From: Pavona decussata
Taxonomy: Eukaryota
DNA: 64,000 nucleotides
Direction of reading: 5' to 3'
Assembly (NCBI GenBank): GCA_977016875.1
Contig: CDRNST010000273.1
Coordinates: 1,426,001 to 1,490,000, forward strand
Shown here: piece by piece, positions 16,167-23,997 of the stretch
Numbering within the stretch: the first letter of the stretch is position 1
Layout: the number at the start of each line of letters is the position of its first letter
Position numbers and translations under genes: made by a program
Notes under the pieces: generated by a model
What the model was told of the DNA's origin: nothing
What the model saw: only the letters and a program-made list of their open reading frames with translations
Database searches by the model: none

Positions 16167-19100
16167 TCAATTAATGGTAAATCTTAGATACTTGTCCCTT
16201 TCTAATTTCTGTCCCTCTTTTAAGGAAGATGTCAAACTGTTCTTCTGTTTTTCAACAATGTTCTCATTGTGGTAAAAATCCATTAAGAAATTGTACAGAT
16301 AGTGCACTGGAAAAGACTGCATAGTTGCACTCCGTAGTCGTTTAAGATTTTTGCTGTTGTTCTGTGATTCTTGGTAACTTGTCTTTATGACATCCCTCTG
16401 GATGCACAAATCAATATTGTGAAATTCACACAAAGTTGACTTGTGTGGATTTGTGGAAGTATGAAATCTGTCACCAACTATGTACCTCCTGCTTGATTGT
16501 GTCAGTGGATGACGATGATCAGCACCCGAATTTTCTGTCTCTTGTACATGTAGCTTGTGTGCGCTAAATTCCGGAATCACAATTTCAGGAACACTGACCT
16601 ACAATGAGAGTAATACATTAAAATTAAAAGATAATTGAATGAGCCGAAGAAGTTGTGAATTAGTTACTTACAAAATACAAGAATAATGACGAGTGATGAA
16701 CATCAGTGGTAGGAATTGAACAAGTTTATTATGGCGTGCAAACCATTGTGGGAGCACTCAAAGGGTTGCTTAGTGCATTCTTAATTCGTCCCATCAAAAA
16801 CTAACGCAACCAGTCACAAGTATACCAAAAACAATCACACTGCAGGCTCGGTACTGATACTTGTTTCCCTTAATGAACATGATCAGTGCAATAGTCAACC
16901 TTTCTTGTCTCAGTTCTCACCTAGACAAATACAAAGGGTAGAGGAGAGGGGCTCTTATTTTTACCCAACAAGAGGGGTGTTTACTTGTAGGGGGCATCTA
17001 TTCAAGGGGAGGGTGCATATTTGAGGATTTACAGTAATATTAATATAAAAGCGCCATCCTGGCACCAAAAGACAAGTGAAGTGAAGTGAAATATATGACA
17101 TAGCAACTAAACTACATTTATTTGAATTAGAAAATGTAACAGATCCAAAATCTCCCTATAAAATTCTACAATCTTACTGCATGTTATAAATGAAAGGTAG
17201 TCCTGTAAAGTCTGAAAGAAAAATGACACAAAATCTAGTGAAATTCATTTATTACCTCCTTTGTTGGTTCCTTATCCAAAACTGGTTTTTCAAAGCAACC
17301 CAAGCAATCACCCCACAACTGTGATGCCACCTCTGGAACTCTTAAGTCAAGATGCCGAGAAAATCCACAAGGAGTGTCATTGACCAGGAGCACTGGTGGG
17401 TACTTTAAAGAAAGGTATAAATCAGCCGCATCTCTTACTGACTCTTGTAGGAGAAGGAACTTGGATGCAACGGTTGTCTAGATTGAAATAGAATTATACA
17501 TTGTAAATGAATGAAGTTACATCTCGATAATGATCCAAGCAAGTTAAAGGAAACAGAAAAAATGGGGCAGGACACAAATTGAGCATCACATAATCTCAAC
17601 ATTCAATCATGTTTTACGTACAAATATGTGAAAGTTCAGTCACGAAATAATTTGAACCTTACCCCATGTCGACAAACCATGTGATAAAAGCCACCTGTGT
17701 GACCACAAACTTGTGTAAACCCATGGCAAGGTGAAGAGCCAGTCAGCAATGAGGAGTAAAGGGCCTGTAATGCCCCAACCAGCAGTGCCTAAAATAACAA
17801 ATATTTACCCATTTAACAAGCACTCGACAGTAACTTTTGAATGAAATGAAACTTTAAAGGTACACTATCATCTTGAACACAAATTGATAAATACCTTAGA
17901 GAGCTTGGCAAACTTCTCTATCTTACAATCCCCGCAAATAGCCCGCAATTCCTGTAATGTCATATTTTCCAATGATGCCATATTAATACGTTTGTTCTTA
18001 ATGAGTTGATGCAAAAGCATTGGATCTCCTAGGGAACAATGAAAAATACTAGAATTAAATCATGTTTACCCTTTAAAGTGCCTATATGTGCTTTTAAAAG
18101 CAACTTTAGACATGTTTCACTTTATTGTCACTGTGCCAAGATATAGAGCACATATTATATAACTACTGTAGAGGAGAAATACAGTAATAAATCCGCCAAA
18201 TGGAACTGTTTAAACAGTGACCATGTGCGCTTAATAGAGGGGATCAACCATTTATAGAGGTCGAGCTGACATTTAAAACAATATGTTACCCCTTTGATGA
18301 GCAACGGCTGATGATCAAAGTGCTTGTTTTAATTACAAGCTAATACTTTGATTCACTAATACTTAAATACCAGTTAATACTCCAAGTATAGAAATGCAAA
18401 TTGCAATCTCATTTGTCAAGCCCACATTAAATTGTCAACAAAATCCATATGGAAGATGAATTAAACTATAAAACATGTACTAACATGCATTAAGTAACAC
18501 ATTTAGTTCACTCAATTAAATTACGCTGTAGGTAAAATTTTATGATGTTTAAATATTAAATAATAATGAAAACTAGTAGAATTACATGTACTTACCATTA
18601 ATTTTGTCTTTTTCAAAGAATTTGCCTCCAAGATACACACTTTTCTTTTTCATCTCAGTGTTGAAAATCTGCTCTGCCCTCATACTAGGAGCAATAATAG
18701 GGGGAACCCTGGCAGCCTTTATAGTGTTGTCTTGTTGTGAAGTTGTATAGCTCACTCTCTCTACAAAGATTGACTTCAGATGTCCAAGAAATTCTTCCAA
18801 AGATGGGAGCTGTTCAGCCTCACCTGAAACTTCATCCTGCTGTTGATAATCAACCTGGAATTGAGATCAGTTAAATAGAGTTAATANNNNNNNNNNNNNN
18901 NNNNNNNNNNNNNNNNNNNNNNNNNNNNNNNNNNNNNNNNNNNNNNNNNNNNNNNNNNNNNNNNNNNNNNNNNNNNNNNNNNNNNNNNNNNNNNNNNNNN
19001 NNNNNNNNNNNNNNNNNNNNNNNNNNNNNNNNNNNNNNNNNNNNNNNNNNNNNNNNNNNNNNNNNNNNNNNNNNNNNNNNNNNNTATTGTACATGATGTA

Positions 19101-22100
19101 ACTTAGCTGTCATGGTAAATTCAAGAAGCTGATACAGAAGTTTTGAGCATATTGGCTCAGTTCATGGGAGTTCTTTCAAGTTACTACCAAGAAGGGCTAA
19201 TGCTCAAGAAGTAATATTTAGCGTAACTTAAACTTAGAGCAGCCTTGCAAGCACTAGCAGATGTGACAAAAAGTTTCACTTACCGCATCTATGCTACAGC
19301 AATTTTTTTCATTGCCATCACCAAAATAAACATGGCCGACCACACCACATATGCCACAAATTACATTATCTAAGCAACGATTAGAAAGTAATTCAAAGGC
19401 ATAGAATCCATTGTATAGAAGTCCAGCAATGTACTTGCACTCATTATCAGTAACCTGCAACTGTAAATTACACAAATACACTTGTTACAAGTTTGTTGGA
19501 AAATACATAATTTATATTTATCAACACAGTTTATTAACAAATTGATTTGAGCAAGGATGACATCTTGTATATACAATTAGTAAAAATAAAGCTCCAATTA
19601 TGTGCTGACCTATAAATAGATCAGTTCACTCAAGGAAAAAGAAAAGATACTAAAAACAAGGCATACCTGGCCACACTTGCACCATCCAGCAAGGCTGCTT
19701 TCAATAGCAACGGTCAATGGCACTCCACGCTTGAACAGCTCTCTCCACTGCACAAGAAGTTCCAGGGCAACAAGAAGTTTGTCCGATATGTTAAATAGCC
19801 CTTTAATAAAAACACAAAAATTTATTATTTCAGTATGGAATTTTTAGGATAAATGGGATAATTAAAATTTTGTTCAAAAAATAAATTTTAAGTCACAGTG
19901 TATATTTTTTTCTGGGGGGGGGGGGGAGTGGGGTTGGTTGTTGAATGGCATTACATGCTCAAATCAATCACAGTATCAAAAATTGCTGACCTTTATTATC
20001 CAATTAGACTTGTTAAAATATCATGATTAGGTATAGTCGCTGCAAAAAAATACCCAGGTACAAGAATATTTCTACTTGTCTCTATGGAATGCACACATTA
20101 TACAATATCTGTCATGGGTTGAGTGTATTTTTCACACCCCAACAGGGTTGGATAATAAATAACTTACAAGACATTTTAACTCTTTTATACTAAACAGACC
20201 ACACAGAAGTTCATACTAAACGAAACTGTGCAATCATGTATGTGAACTTAATATTAGAAATACTTTATATTTTTATTGAATAATCTAGTATGATTTCTGT
20301 TTTCTATGGCACATTCATTTCATTACTGTTTTTCTGCATTTTTTCTGTTATCTAAATGAAATCAATATGTTACTGTACCTTGCTCTACAGGCCATACTTG
20401 ATGCATGGCCTTGCAATTCCTGTTTGTGCAGATCTTGACTTTTACATCAACAGTTTGGAAACTGCAAGGTGTCACAATGTACGACCGATCATTGTGCCCC
20501 TGACCTGGATGTCTTTGTGCTGACGTCAAGGCACTTCCACACAGTTCGCATTGGATTGACTCCGGAACAAAATGATCTGGCCAGTTGTTCCCATGCTCAC
20601 CGTGGGCTCTAAAATACTCCTGTGGCACAGGATATGGAATAGACCTCTTGAGATTCATCTGCAAGGTAGACATCCTTCCTACAGACGTGCTTGTAGAACT
20701 TGATGACTGTGCTGTTATGGCTACCTCACTGGAACTAGCGCTTGGTGGAAAAGGAACAGCCTTAGCGAAATCTGGTGATGACAACTTGAGGCTGCAAAAC
20801 AGGACATGCAAATGGATGCATATTTTCTTGCTCTTTAGGAGGGGAGAGGAACGGTTTAGGGAGGAGGGAGAGACGGCCAAAAAAGATAGGGAGGAGGGAG
20901 AAAGGAAGCAAAAAAAATAGGGAGACGGGAGAACCAGCATAAAAAGGGAGGACGGAGGATCCTCTTTAAATAAATGTGGCATGAATGTTTAAGGCCTTAG
21001 TAGCTCATTTCCCTGTATTTTTCCCGCGAACTTTTTTTAGTAGCAGCTCACGGCTGGTTCGCTATACAGACAAATGTATGGAAAGTTCAAAACACGACTG
21101 AACGCTTTCTGTCACAGCTACATCCCTCCAACATTTTTCTTAAAATCCTTTTCCTAGTGCCAAAAGTTTCCAATTCATGAATTTTTCAGAAGCGATGTTT
21201 TATGAAAATTATTTGACATCGGATTTCCATACAAACACTGTTACTTCAAGCCTGTTTGCCTACTCGTCAAAATGGTCCAAAATGGCGTCGAAAACCGTGA
21301 TAAGGCCTATTTCAAACATCCAATTCACTTTCCTTTACACATGTGTAACAAGGGCGAAAGATTTTTAAAAAAAAAATCAATTTTTTACGTGCGCACGCAC
21401 TTCAAACCGACGGAAACTTTCCAGTTCAGGCTTTGTCAAAGGCGAAGCCTTAACACTTCTCAGAAAAAACTCTTCAAAAAGAACATTTGAAGAAAATATT
21501 ACTCTATTCAACCAGAGATTACGCTACAGAAGTTACCCCTATAACCTTAAAGATAAAACTCTCTCAGAAGTCAATTTCATCGAAAGAATGTTGGCCCCGG
21601 AGTAAAAAAACAAACAAAAAAGGCGCAGAAACATTCTGCCGTTTGTTACAGGATATCGCCCTTGTGTGCTAACCTAAAAGCCATTCAGATGAGTAAATAG
21701 CACTTGATAGAAAATCAGCCTCTTCTAAGAGAGATCTTCAAAGACCCTTCCCTACTTTCGTACAGAAAAGGGAGATCTTTGAAAGAGGTACTCGTAAGAG
21801 CAAATTAGCTTTGAAGGTCATATTCTTCCTATCTCGACCAATAGGAGCCTTGTTTGGCCTGTAATCATTATTTTACCATCTTTACACGGTTAAATGTTGT
21901 AAACATGAAAGCTTCAAGCTTACGTGACAAAACCGAAAGGTAGTATGGGAAGAACGGGATATAACGACATGACAAACGTGTTTGGTATGTCAAGATGTGG
22001 AAACGAGGCACTGCGGTGAAGTAGCAAATAAAATAAGCCTCTTAAAAGACTTATCAGGGAGAAAGGTGAAAAATCAGGGAGGAGGGAGAAACGGCCAAAA

Positions 22101-23780: not shown

Positions 23781-23997
23781 TTGTCTGGTACACGGGTATT
23801 GTGTCACGTAAACCACTACATATCGAGTGATTCCCACTACATATCGAGTGATTTCATTGGTTTATTGGAAACAAATAAATATATATCGAACGATCCCATT
23901 GGTCTATTATGCCGCTACAAGTCGGTACAGGAAGTGCCGTGAAAACCAATGAGGAGGCCGGTTTGGAATAGTGCCGGATTACGGGTTTTGTTGTATG
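23781..23997 (-). promoter_or_regulatory. Putative promoter/subterminal region of the KDZ transposase gene
   Basis: Several CCAAT/ATTGG boxes and a 21-bp direct repeat (ccactacatatcgagtgatt x2) directly upstream of aaATGGCG. Confidence 0.4.

Follow-up and report, generated by a model that had tools for sequence, protein, structure and literature searches.

An HMGXB3-related and probably mobile gene family encoding a putative DDE-type transposase-like protein in Pavona decussata

HMGXB3 is conserved across vertebrates, and its function and origin are poorly understood. No paper linking it to KDZ elements was found in the literature searched; a link is implied by the Pfam annotation of the cysteine cluster CxC4 (PF18717), which is described as 'associated with KDZ transposases' and is precomputed in every one of 120 listed HMGXB3 matches, all but one of which also carry PF00505 (the HMG box) and PF09011. 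Zisupton elements, known from fish and nematodes, are described as multi-exonic and gene-like (PMC9297572) and possess terminal inverted repeats (TIRs) and 8-bp target-site duplications (TSDs) (PMC12730594). Here, we describe a minus-strand gene of Pavona decussata at positions 16167–23780 of a 64,000-nucleotide stretch (hereafter the window: assembly GCA_977016875.1, contig CDRNST010000273.1, positions 1,426,001–1,490,000 of the forward strand). An initial annotation, made from the letters of the window, had proposed an HMGXB3-like transposase of the KDZ/Zisupton class that was recently mobile and sits beside an element-like terminus. Our reading is that the locus is probably one copy of a KDZ-class, HMGXB3-related mobile-element family encoding a DDE-type transposase-like protein.

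The four motifs named in the initial annotation (YFGDGNEKNCC, LVNDTPCG, GDRFH, and YQESQNN) are all present and occur in that order. They were compared in an alignment of 13 full-length proteins, to which the window exons were added as separate fragments. The first Asp, in FGDGNEKN (codon 19317–19319), is matched by GDGNEKN in Clytia, by SDGGED and TDGEVK in environmental proteins, and by LDVDAK in P0134 (1595 aa). In five tetrapod HMGXB3 proteins the same position reads IAQRN, with Gln in place of Asp—as had been claimed for HMGXB3—and in the Nematostella protein P0107 it reads FAESC. The second Asp, in NDTPCG (codon 17376–17378), is conserved in the motif-retaining relatives; HMGXB3 keeps the Asp and has lost the next Cys, and P0107 also keeps the Asp. 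The DRFH..H..C motif, GDRFH(x5)H(x4)C in the window (Asp codon 16470–16472), is present in most relatives (P0125 has GHRLQL), and the Glu of QESQN (codon 16368–16370) is found as QE.xN in relatives and ME.xN in P0134, with P0167 ending before this point. Both of these are absent from the five tetrapod HMGXB3 proteins and from P0107, and the loss in HMGXB3 thus extends beyond the first Asp.

Both Asp motifs and the Glu are kept in every paralogue that was read, wherever the exon is present and even in copies with stop codons. DRFH is kept in most paralogues, the exceptions being DRFQ in C287 and DGFH in C38, both of which are decayed copies. The copies on C2, C58, C143, C90, C240, and C144 were placed by coordinates only. 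The two Asp residues, DRFH, and the Glu are also kept in the marine homologues P0027, P0040, and P0134.

The gene belongs to a decaying multi-copy family, with dispersed copies that have a common sharp end and different flanks. The genome-wide copy count called for by the initial annotation gave 14 matches to exon 9 in the 602-Mb assembly, at 43%–99% identity; a DNA search added partial copies on C240, C2, C143, C58, C90, C57, C175, C354, C80, C195, and C51, for a total of around 25 loci with full, deleted, or decayed copies. The copies on C307, C83, C175, and C208 include all of exons 2–9 and are stop-free in the aligned segments (which do not cover exon 1), making them candidate intact copies for biochemistry. 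Those on C252 and C67 have a common deletion of exons 2–4, C49 is without most of exons 2–7, and stops occur in C287, C38, and C49. Within one of two subfamilies (B), the ratio of nonsynonymous to synonymous substitution (dN/dS) is 0.73–0.95, which is near neutral; between subfamilies, the proportion of synonymous differences (pS) is ~0.8 and hence saturated, and that of nonsynonymous differences (pN) is 0.26–0.39. Transposon families typically show long-term constraint on the lineage together with neutral decay of individual copies.

Copies from both subfamilies have a sharp end on the gene-proximal side of the unit. In the window this end (23766–23984, minus strand) has its boundary at 23984±1, and it is common to the copies on C307, C240, C2, C58, C143, C90, C175, and C80. 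The 24-mer ending at 23984 is found with 0–1 mismatches at the copy ends of six subfamily-A loci (C273, C58, C240, C2, C143, and C307), and the weaker copies on C90, C175, and C80 stop no more than 6 nt from the boundary. In subfamily B, the copies on C208, C252, C67, and C49 end at a single base (...ACTGTTGTGTTG), beyond which each has a different, unrelated flank; that of C49 is single-copy DNA. Upstream of the gene, in A as in B, 37–39 nt separate a CCAATGAG box from the boundary that lies beyond it; the two boundaries are thus at homologous positions, even though the DNA of the two subfamilies cannot otherwise be aligned. Random segmental duplication would hardly produce a boundary shared in this way, and 23984±1 is therefore taken as a real element end.

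The element-like terminus that had been predicted thus corresponds to a genuine shared boundary, ~205 nt upstream of the ATG in subfamily A, although it was placed 13 nt too far out. The distance from the ATG to the junction at 23997, given as ~215 bp, is 217 nt; the junction, however, is the start of an unrelated repeat. This repeat (23999–27129) has at least 40 copies that are 82%–98% identical, begins with a 23-nt palindrome (24002–24024 / 24047–24069), and accounts for the abruptness of the junction. The letters CATACAACAAAACCCG, proposed as the family terminus, fall in the short unique stretch (23985–23998) that separates the family boundary from the repeat, and are mostly unique flank.

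That the family is, or recently was, mobile is the best reading of these data, and a fairly probable one, although a number of observations weigh against it. The window and C307 copies share at least 15 kb (8579–23984), and over 8.8 kb they differ by 17 mismatches and a small number of indels (~0.3%), with four of the differences being coding and three protein-changing; the C307 copy may be an allele of the window locus. Other transposable elements (TEs) directly abut the boundary in C307 and C208, so that some differences between flanks may be insertions next to the boundary; given the TE at its boundary, C307 may be the window locus with a TE inserted there. The distal end of the element was not reached; every apparent boundary on that side is another TE in one of the copies. 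The proximal 23–24 nt have no inverted partner elsewhere in the window, nor any in the genome when up to 3 mismatches in 24 are allowed, and the proximal end has no TIR match in 8579–8900. The TSD expected at the terminus by the initial annotation was not found, with no duplication at the flanks examined for any copy, and a search of this assembly for an empty site found none (C49 has single-copy DNA on one flank and, on the other, DNA that C208 also carries). The recent mobility claimed for the locus is, as a result, not proven: the 99.7% identical C307 twin could be an allele, and the window copy is disrupted.

On the distal side, the DNA 3′ of the gene (8579–16166) is common to the C307 copy only and is part of either a larger unit or allelic flank. 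Three candidate distal termini were rejected: window position 13638, where the difference from C307 is a 27-kb TE flanked by AGTGAAT; C208 position 190212, which reflects a MITE (miniature inverted-repeat transposable element) and a deletion in C252 and C67; and C208 position 185091, which marks a 1.9-kb insertion in C208, with similarity to C49 resuming beyond it. Shared end motifs ATTAAAC and ACCCAC were also rejected as being without statistical support. Comparing the 3′ regions across the two subfamilies revealed no protein-level conservation, and no PHD-like Cys/His pattern was found in 8579–16167 or in the C307 insertion.

The best-surviving alternative, which is nevertheless unlikely, is that a host gene family has expanded. 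In this view a gene derived from KDZ was domesticated in cnidarians, kept its catalytic residues, and spread by segmental duplication, with C307 as the other haplotype and the boundary as a promoter end that doubles as a TE insertion hot spot. Domesticated transposases such as RAG1 and PGBD5 have kept catalytic residues for a cellular job. The eight introns, the CCAAT-box promoter, and the strong long-term purifying selection would all suit a host gene; so would the lack of any TIR or TSD found, the long 3′-side stretches common to copies, the end-to-end TEs at the boundary in C307 and C208, and the allele-like difference between window and C307. Against it are the ~25 full, deleted, and decayed loci with near-neutral substitution within a subfamily, and a third copy at 99% identity or more on C240. 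The right flanks of C49 and C208 are unrelated, that of C49 being single-copy, although these two copies have more than 15 kb in common; moreover, the ends of the two subfamilies are at homologous positions despite synonymous saturation between them, and intronless relatives occur in marine metagenome contigs.

Within the mobile-element reading, a more specific and quite doubtful proposal is that HMGXB3-like elements move, or rearrange DNA, as units of at least 15–20 kb around a KDZ-related DDE enzyme, with no TIR or TSD, one fixed end on the gene side, and a variable end on the other. A one-ended unit would account for the long shared 3′ stretches, for rearrangement breakpoints exactly at the proximal end, and for the partial subfamily-A copies, in which the proximal end is retained but the inner end point varies. 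If true, this one-ended or transduction-like mode would be new for the superfamily, and the family would offer a living model of the enzyme ancestral to HMGXB3.

As to the enzyme itself, it is likely to have a DDE fold and to belong to the KDZ lineage. PF18758 (the KDZ model) is itself not matched, so that the KDZ/Zisupton class named in the initial annotation has indirect evidence behind it: CxC4 in relatives, Atlas neighbours, and a structural model. Direct evidence for the class is weak. In a six-frame genome search, PF18758 matched 21 other places and not this locus, and it gave no match at E ≤ 10 to the catalytic halves of seven relatives. CxC4 did not match exon 2 of the window or the intact exon 2 of C307. 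A Foldseek search of the model described below against the PDB returned no match, and the VIA Z scores of its core matches fall in the range of chance arrangements. An hhalign comparison of the family core with KDZ fragments of this genome was also not significant, and the C.HG...E stretch of exon 7 lines up with one such fragment non-significantly. On single exons, Pfam found nothing except a borderline Rho_N in exon 6 (25.0 bits against a cut-off of 24.9).

Indirect evidence is stronger. CxC4 is present in Nematostella P0107 at 36.0 bits, against a cut-off of 26.9, and is found below threshold in P0125, P0134, P0040, and P0167. The Atlas clusters nearest to the Clytia protein and to the structural model, by features and by shape, are those of HMGXB3, then those carrying PF18758, and then those of IS5, IS6, and rve transposases. 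The model is an AlphaFold prediction of the homologue P0027 (residues 400–856) from a 16-row alignment, standing in for the window protein; its predicted local distance difference test score (pLDDT) of 62 is mediocre, and its predicted template-modelling score is 0.68. In it, D51 ends a strand (47–51), D269 follows a strand (265–267), and E397 starts a helix (396–406). In the PDB, alignments extending over the entire core were obtained with the P-element, ISCth4, and Tn5 transposases, with IstA and TnsB, and with retroviral integrases (Z 3.5–5.2); the best of these, with the three named transposases and the integrases, have Z 4–5.2. Template-modelling scores of the structural neighbours are 0.3–0.59. 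Model residues 160–210, which correspond to exon 6, match SAP, LEM, and Rho-N domains (Z 5.2–5.8), in agreement with the Rho_N match.

It could be argued that the acidic motifs are not a catalytic triad and that the protein is a zinc-finger and SAP DNA-binding factor without a nuclease fold. The missing PF18758 match and the empty Foldseek search are in keeping with this, and so is the low confidence of the model near the first Asp and the Glu, where it is poorest (pLDDT below 50 at residues 52–71 and 392–417). The motifs do not, however, vary among saturated paralogues or distant marine homologues, and they were lost together in HMGXB3; in addition, nearly every structural neighbour that spans the core is a DDE transposase or integrase, and a CxC4 cluster is typical of KDZ transposases. 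This alternative is accordingly very improbable.

Under the preferred reading, the protein would begin with a Cys finger and a Cys cluster at its N terminus, and an RNase-H-like core would come next. Within this core, strand 1 would lead to the first Asp, succeeded by a long insertion with a SAP-like DNA-binding motif and by the second Asp after strand 4; the core would close with DRFH..H..C and with the Glu on the following helix. The gene would be transcribed inward from its own putative CCAAT-box promoter, ~200 nt from the element end, and its product would cut and join DNA at that proximal end, thereby mobilising the unit.

Homology to HMGXB3, as proposed initially, was traced in several ways. 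With frog HMGXB3 as the tblastn query, exons 2, 3, 4, 5, 8, and 9 of the window were matched in order (E 2e-7 to 0.65). Clytia P0167 (XP_066920476.1, 839 aa) matched every exon except exon 6, and itself matches frog HMGXB3 at E 8e-41; this protein and a second Clytia homologue, P0014 (XP_066919083.1, 464 aa), bear the NCBI name 'HMG domain-containing protein 3-like'. Exons were searched singly or via natural homologues. Based on these alignments, the window gene is homologous to HMGXB3, and colinear with it, over the transposase-derived half.

An exon-9 profile built from seven copies in this genome matched 180 proteins (93 of them at E ≤ 1e-10), the majority of which are exon-sized fragments. 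Intronless relatives with open reading frames (ORFs) of 713–891 aa occur in environmental assemblies. One such member, P0027, is 856 aa long with all catalytic motifs and comes from a 5901-bp Tara Oceans marine metagenome contig (ENA, ERZ907990); the family is thus neither confined to cnidarians nor always multi-exonic. No clear TIR was found on the contig of the intronless relative.

A maximum-likelihood tree of exon 9 (36 rows and 151 columns from one exon, with a long-branch warning) unites the five HMGXB3 proteins and Nematostella P0107 in one clade (support 95/86), the branches of which are long and the exact position uncertain. The window gene groups with the C83 copy and P0001 (99/98), amid poorly resolved motif-retaining copies. 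Five proteins (P0038, P0044, P0048, P0118, and P0121) form the sister group of the HMGXB3 clade in this tree; they keep DRFH and the Glu and have a C-terminal CCHC-type knuckle, C..C..GH....C.

That the window gene is the cnidarian orthologue of HMGXB3—its best named relative, and the label that NCBI gives to the Clytia homologues—is extremely improbable and already contradicted by the data, since the gene family is multi-copy, keeps residues that all HMGXB3 proteins have lost, falls outside the HMGXB3 clade, and lacks an HMG box (PF00505 matched no window exon and not the intact exon 2 of C307). The initial annotation had reached the same view, and had likewise noted no HMG box.

The gene model has nine exons and eight introns, all with consistent phases, and was built from splice sites in the letters and from tblastn of distant full-length relatives. 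After removal of an insertion in exon 2 and of one 6-nt target duplication, the coding length is 2580 nt (859 aa), in close agreement with the phase-consistent nine-exon ORF of ~858 aa that had been anticipated. Coding exon 1 (23766–23780) is predicted to comprise five codons, ATG GCG ACG AAT GCG, with the ATG at 23780 and a gtgagt donor at 23765. An upstream ATG exon is needed because a stop codon lies directly upstream of exon 2 and because the conserved N-terminal finger precedes the first in-frame Met of exon 2; together with the ATG and the donor, the upstream stop points to this exon 1. CCAAT boxes and a putative 5′ untranslated region lie within 23766–23984, upstream of the ATG. Intron 1 (22806–23765) contains a tandem duplication of ~430 bp (22863–23296 and 23307–23732, 90% identical), of which the C143 copy has a single unit.

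The first part of exon 2 (22176–22805, acceptor ctag|GGT) encodes the N-terminal Cys finger, RGRGQCPSCSF..KPKNCKECG, and a Cys/His-rich region; it is alignable to Clytia P0167, to P0125, and to frog HMGXB3 at two places. The second part (20379–20838), which continues the reading frame of the first when the insertion is left out, encodes a Cys cluster, C..C...C..NC, which is the counterpart of CxC4 in homologues and is alignable to the CxC4 region of P0107, P0040, and HMGXB3. Exons 3 (19667–19800) and 5 (18596–18854) were placed by homologue alignment. Exon 4 (19284–19460) carries the first Asp motif, CGICG..YFGDGNEKN; exon 6 (17895–18028) has a SAP/Rho_N-like helix-extension-helix motif, and exon 7 (17663–17788) reads C.H...C.H....H..C.HG. 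The second Asp motif, LLVNDTPCG, is in exon 8 (17256–17477), and exon 9 (16167–16598) holds both GDRFH(x5)H(x4)C and YQESQNN and ends with the stop codon at 16167–16169. All of these exons are on the minus strand.

An assembly gap (18887–19084) falls within intron 4 and conceals no exon. The intron has a gtaagt donor at 19283, after the end of exon 4 at 19284, and a ttccag acceptor at 18855, before exon 5, both in phase 0; a TGA at 18867–18869, in frame with exon 5, prevents that exon from extending into the gap; and homologues cross the junction without missing residues. In three of the four distant full-length homologues (P0027, P0040, and P0107), the residue count at the exon 4/5 junction equals that of the window, with the fourth, P0014, having ~15 extra residues.

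The repair that the ORF had been said to need is explained by a 1.34-kb, non-coding, and unrelated TIR element inserted in exon 2 (20839–22175, ±2 nt). The insertion has 18-nt perfect TIRs (GGAGGGGAGAGGAACGG..., 20837–20854 / 22160–22177) and a 6-nt CTAAAG duplication on both sides, and the copies on C307, C2, C143, and C58 have an empty site in its place. Read-through into the insertion meets a stop after 8 codons; its end is a polypyrimidine-AG and a possible splice acceptor. Unless the insertion is spliced out, the window copy would thus be knocked out by it, whereas exon 2 of the 99.7% identical C307 copy translates uninterrupted.

Other repeats surround the gene. The 27-kb insertion that distinguishes C307 from the window (C307:43914–70790) contains inverted 2.4-kb satellite arrays (45454–47968 / 64195–66128) and a 937-aa ORF (58394–61204) resembling that of a long interspersed nuclear element. 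In the window, 15476–15882 is an unrelated MITE-like repeat of ~350–400 bp with internal inverted repeats and at least 40 copies at 90%–94%. An unrelated 231-bp MITE at 14236–14466 is 96% identical to C83:475410–475636, with both lying 3′ of family genes; the window gene and the C83 paralogue (73%) are themselves only ~70%–77% identical in DNA, despite this common 3′ repeat. Positions 1–8578 are a single large repeat that meets the shared region at 8579 and is 98%–99% identical to C339 and C152, the last 715 bp being a separate high-copy repeat.

How, then, does the family compare with known systems? With KDZ and Zisupton elements it has in common a Cys cluster, apparently of the CxC4 type, ahead of a probable DDE core, the order D..(C.HG..E)..D..C..H..H..C..E, and a multi-exonic, host-gene-like transposase gene, and KDZ clusters are among its nearest structural and feature neighbours. 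It differs in that PF18758 is non-significant on the window family, yet significant on true KDZ copies elsewhere in the genome; in that neither the TIRs nor the 8-bp TSDs of Zisupton were found (the distal end not having been reached); and in having a SAP-like insertion inside the core, with no Ulp1/C48 protease or SWIM finger matched. The family thus marks a clade that the Pfam KDZ model misses and that is now annotated in genomes as 'HMGXB3-like' host genes.

Nematostella P0107 (EDO30873) is a cnidarian member of the same family as the window gene, with CxC4 above the cut-off, but it shows the HMGXB3-type losses and the signatures GVAPKVEFA and YWPPVY..D, and it groups with HMGXB3. Its sequence suggests that it is probably a host HMGXB3 counterpart rather than a transposase; no close counterpart of it was found in this genome. 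If P0107 is the cnidarian counterpart of HMGXB3, domestication possibly predates the cnidarian–bilaterian split.

The likeness of the window gene to HMGXB3 itself runs in colinear order through the RGRG-Cys finger, the Cys cluster, the CG.CG strand, the C.HG..ES.RD block, the second Asp, and the YN.LMD..N..IV helix. HMGXB3 differs in having an HMG box and ~430 more residues, and in having the finger duplicated, the single N-terminal RGRG-Cys finger of the window gene corresponding to two places in HMGXB3. It has Gln for the first Asp and is without DRFH/H/C and QE.xN, whereas the window gene keeps them all; from this comparison, domestication would have removed the first Asp, DRFH/H/C, and the Glu and kept the fingers, the C.HG block, the second Asp, and the C-terminal helix. 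HMGXB3 is also conserved as expected of a host gene (its C-terminal half is 72%–87% identical to that of frog across tetrapods), whereas the window gene is part of a decaying multi-copy family. Vertebrate HMGXB3 and P0107 are thus probably catalytically degenerate, domesticated members of the lineage to which the window gene belongs, and this family, as the likely source lineage, probably represents the kind of mobile element from which HMGXB3 came.

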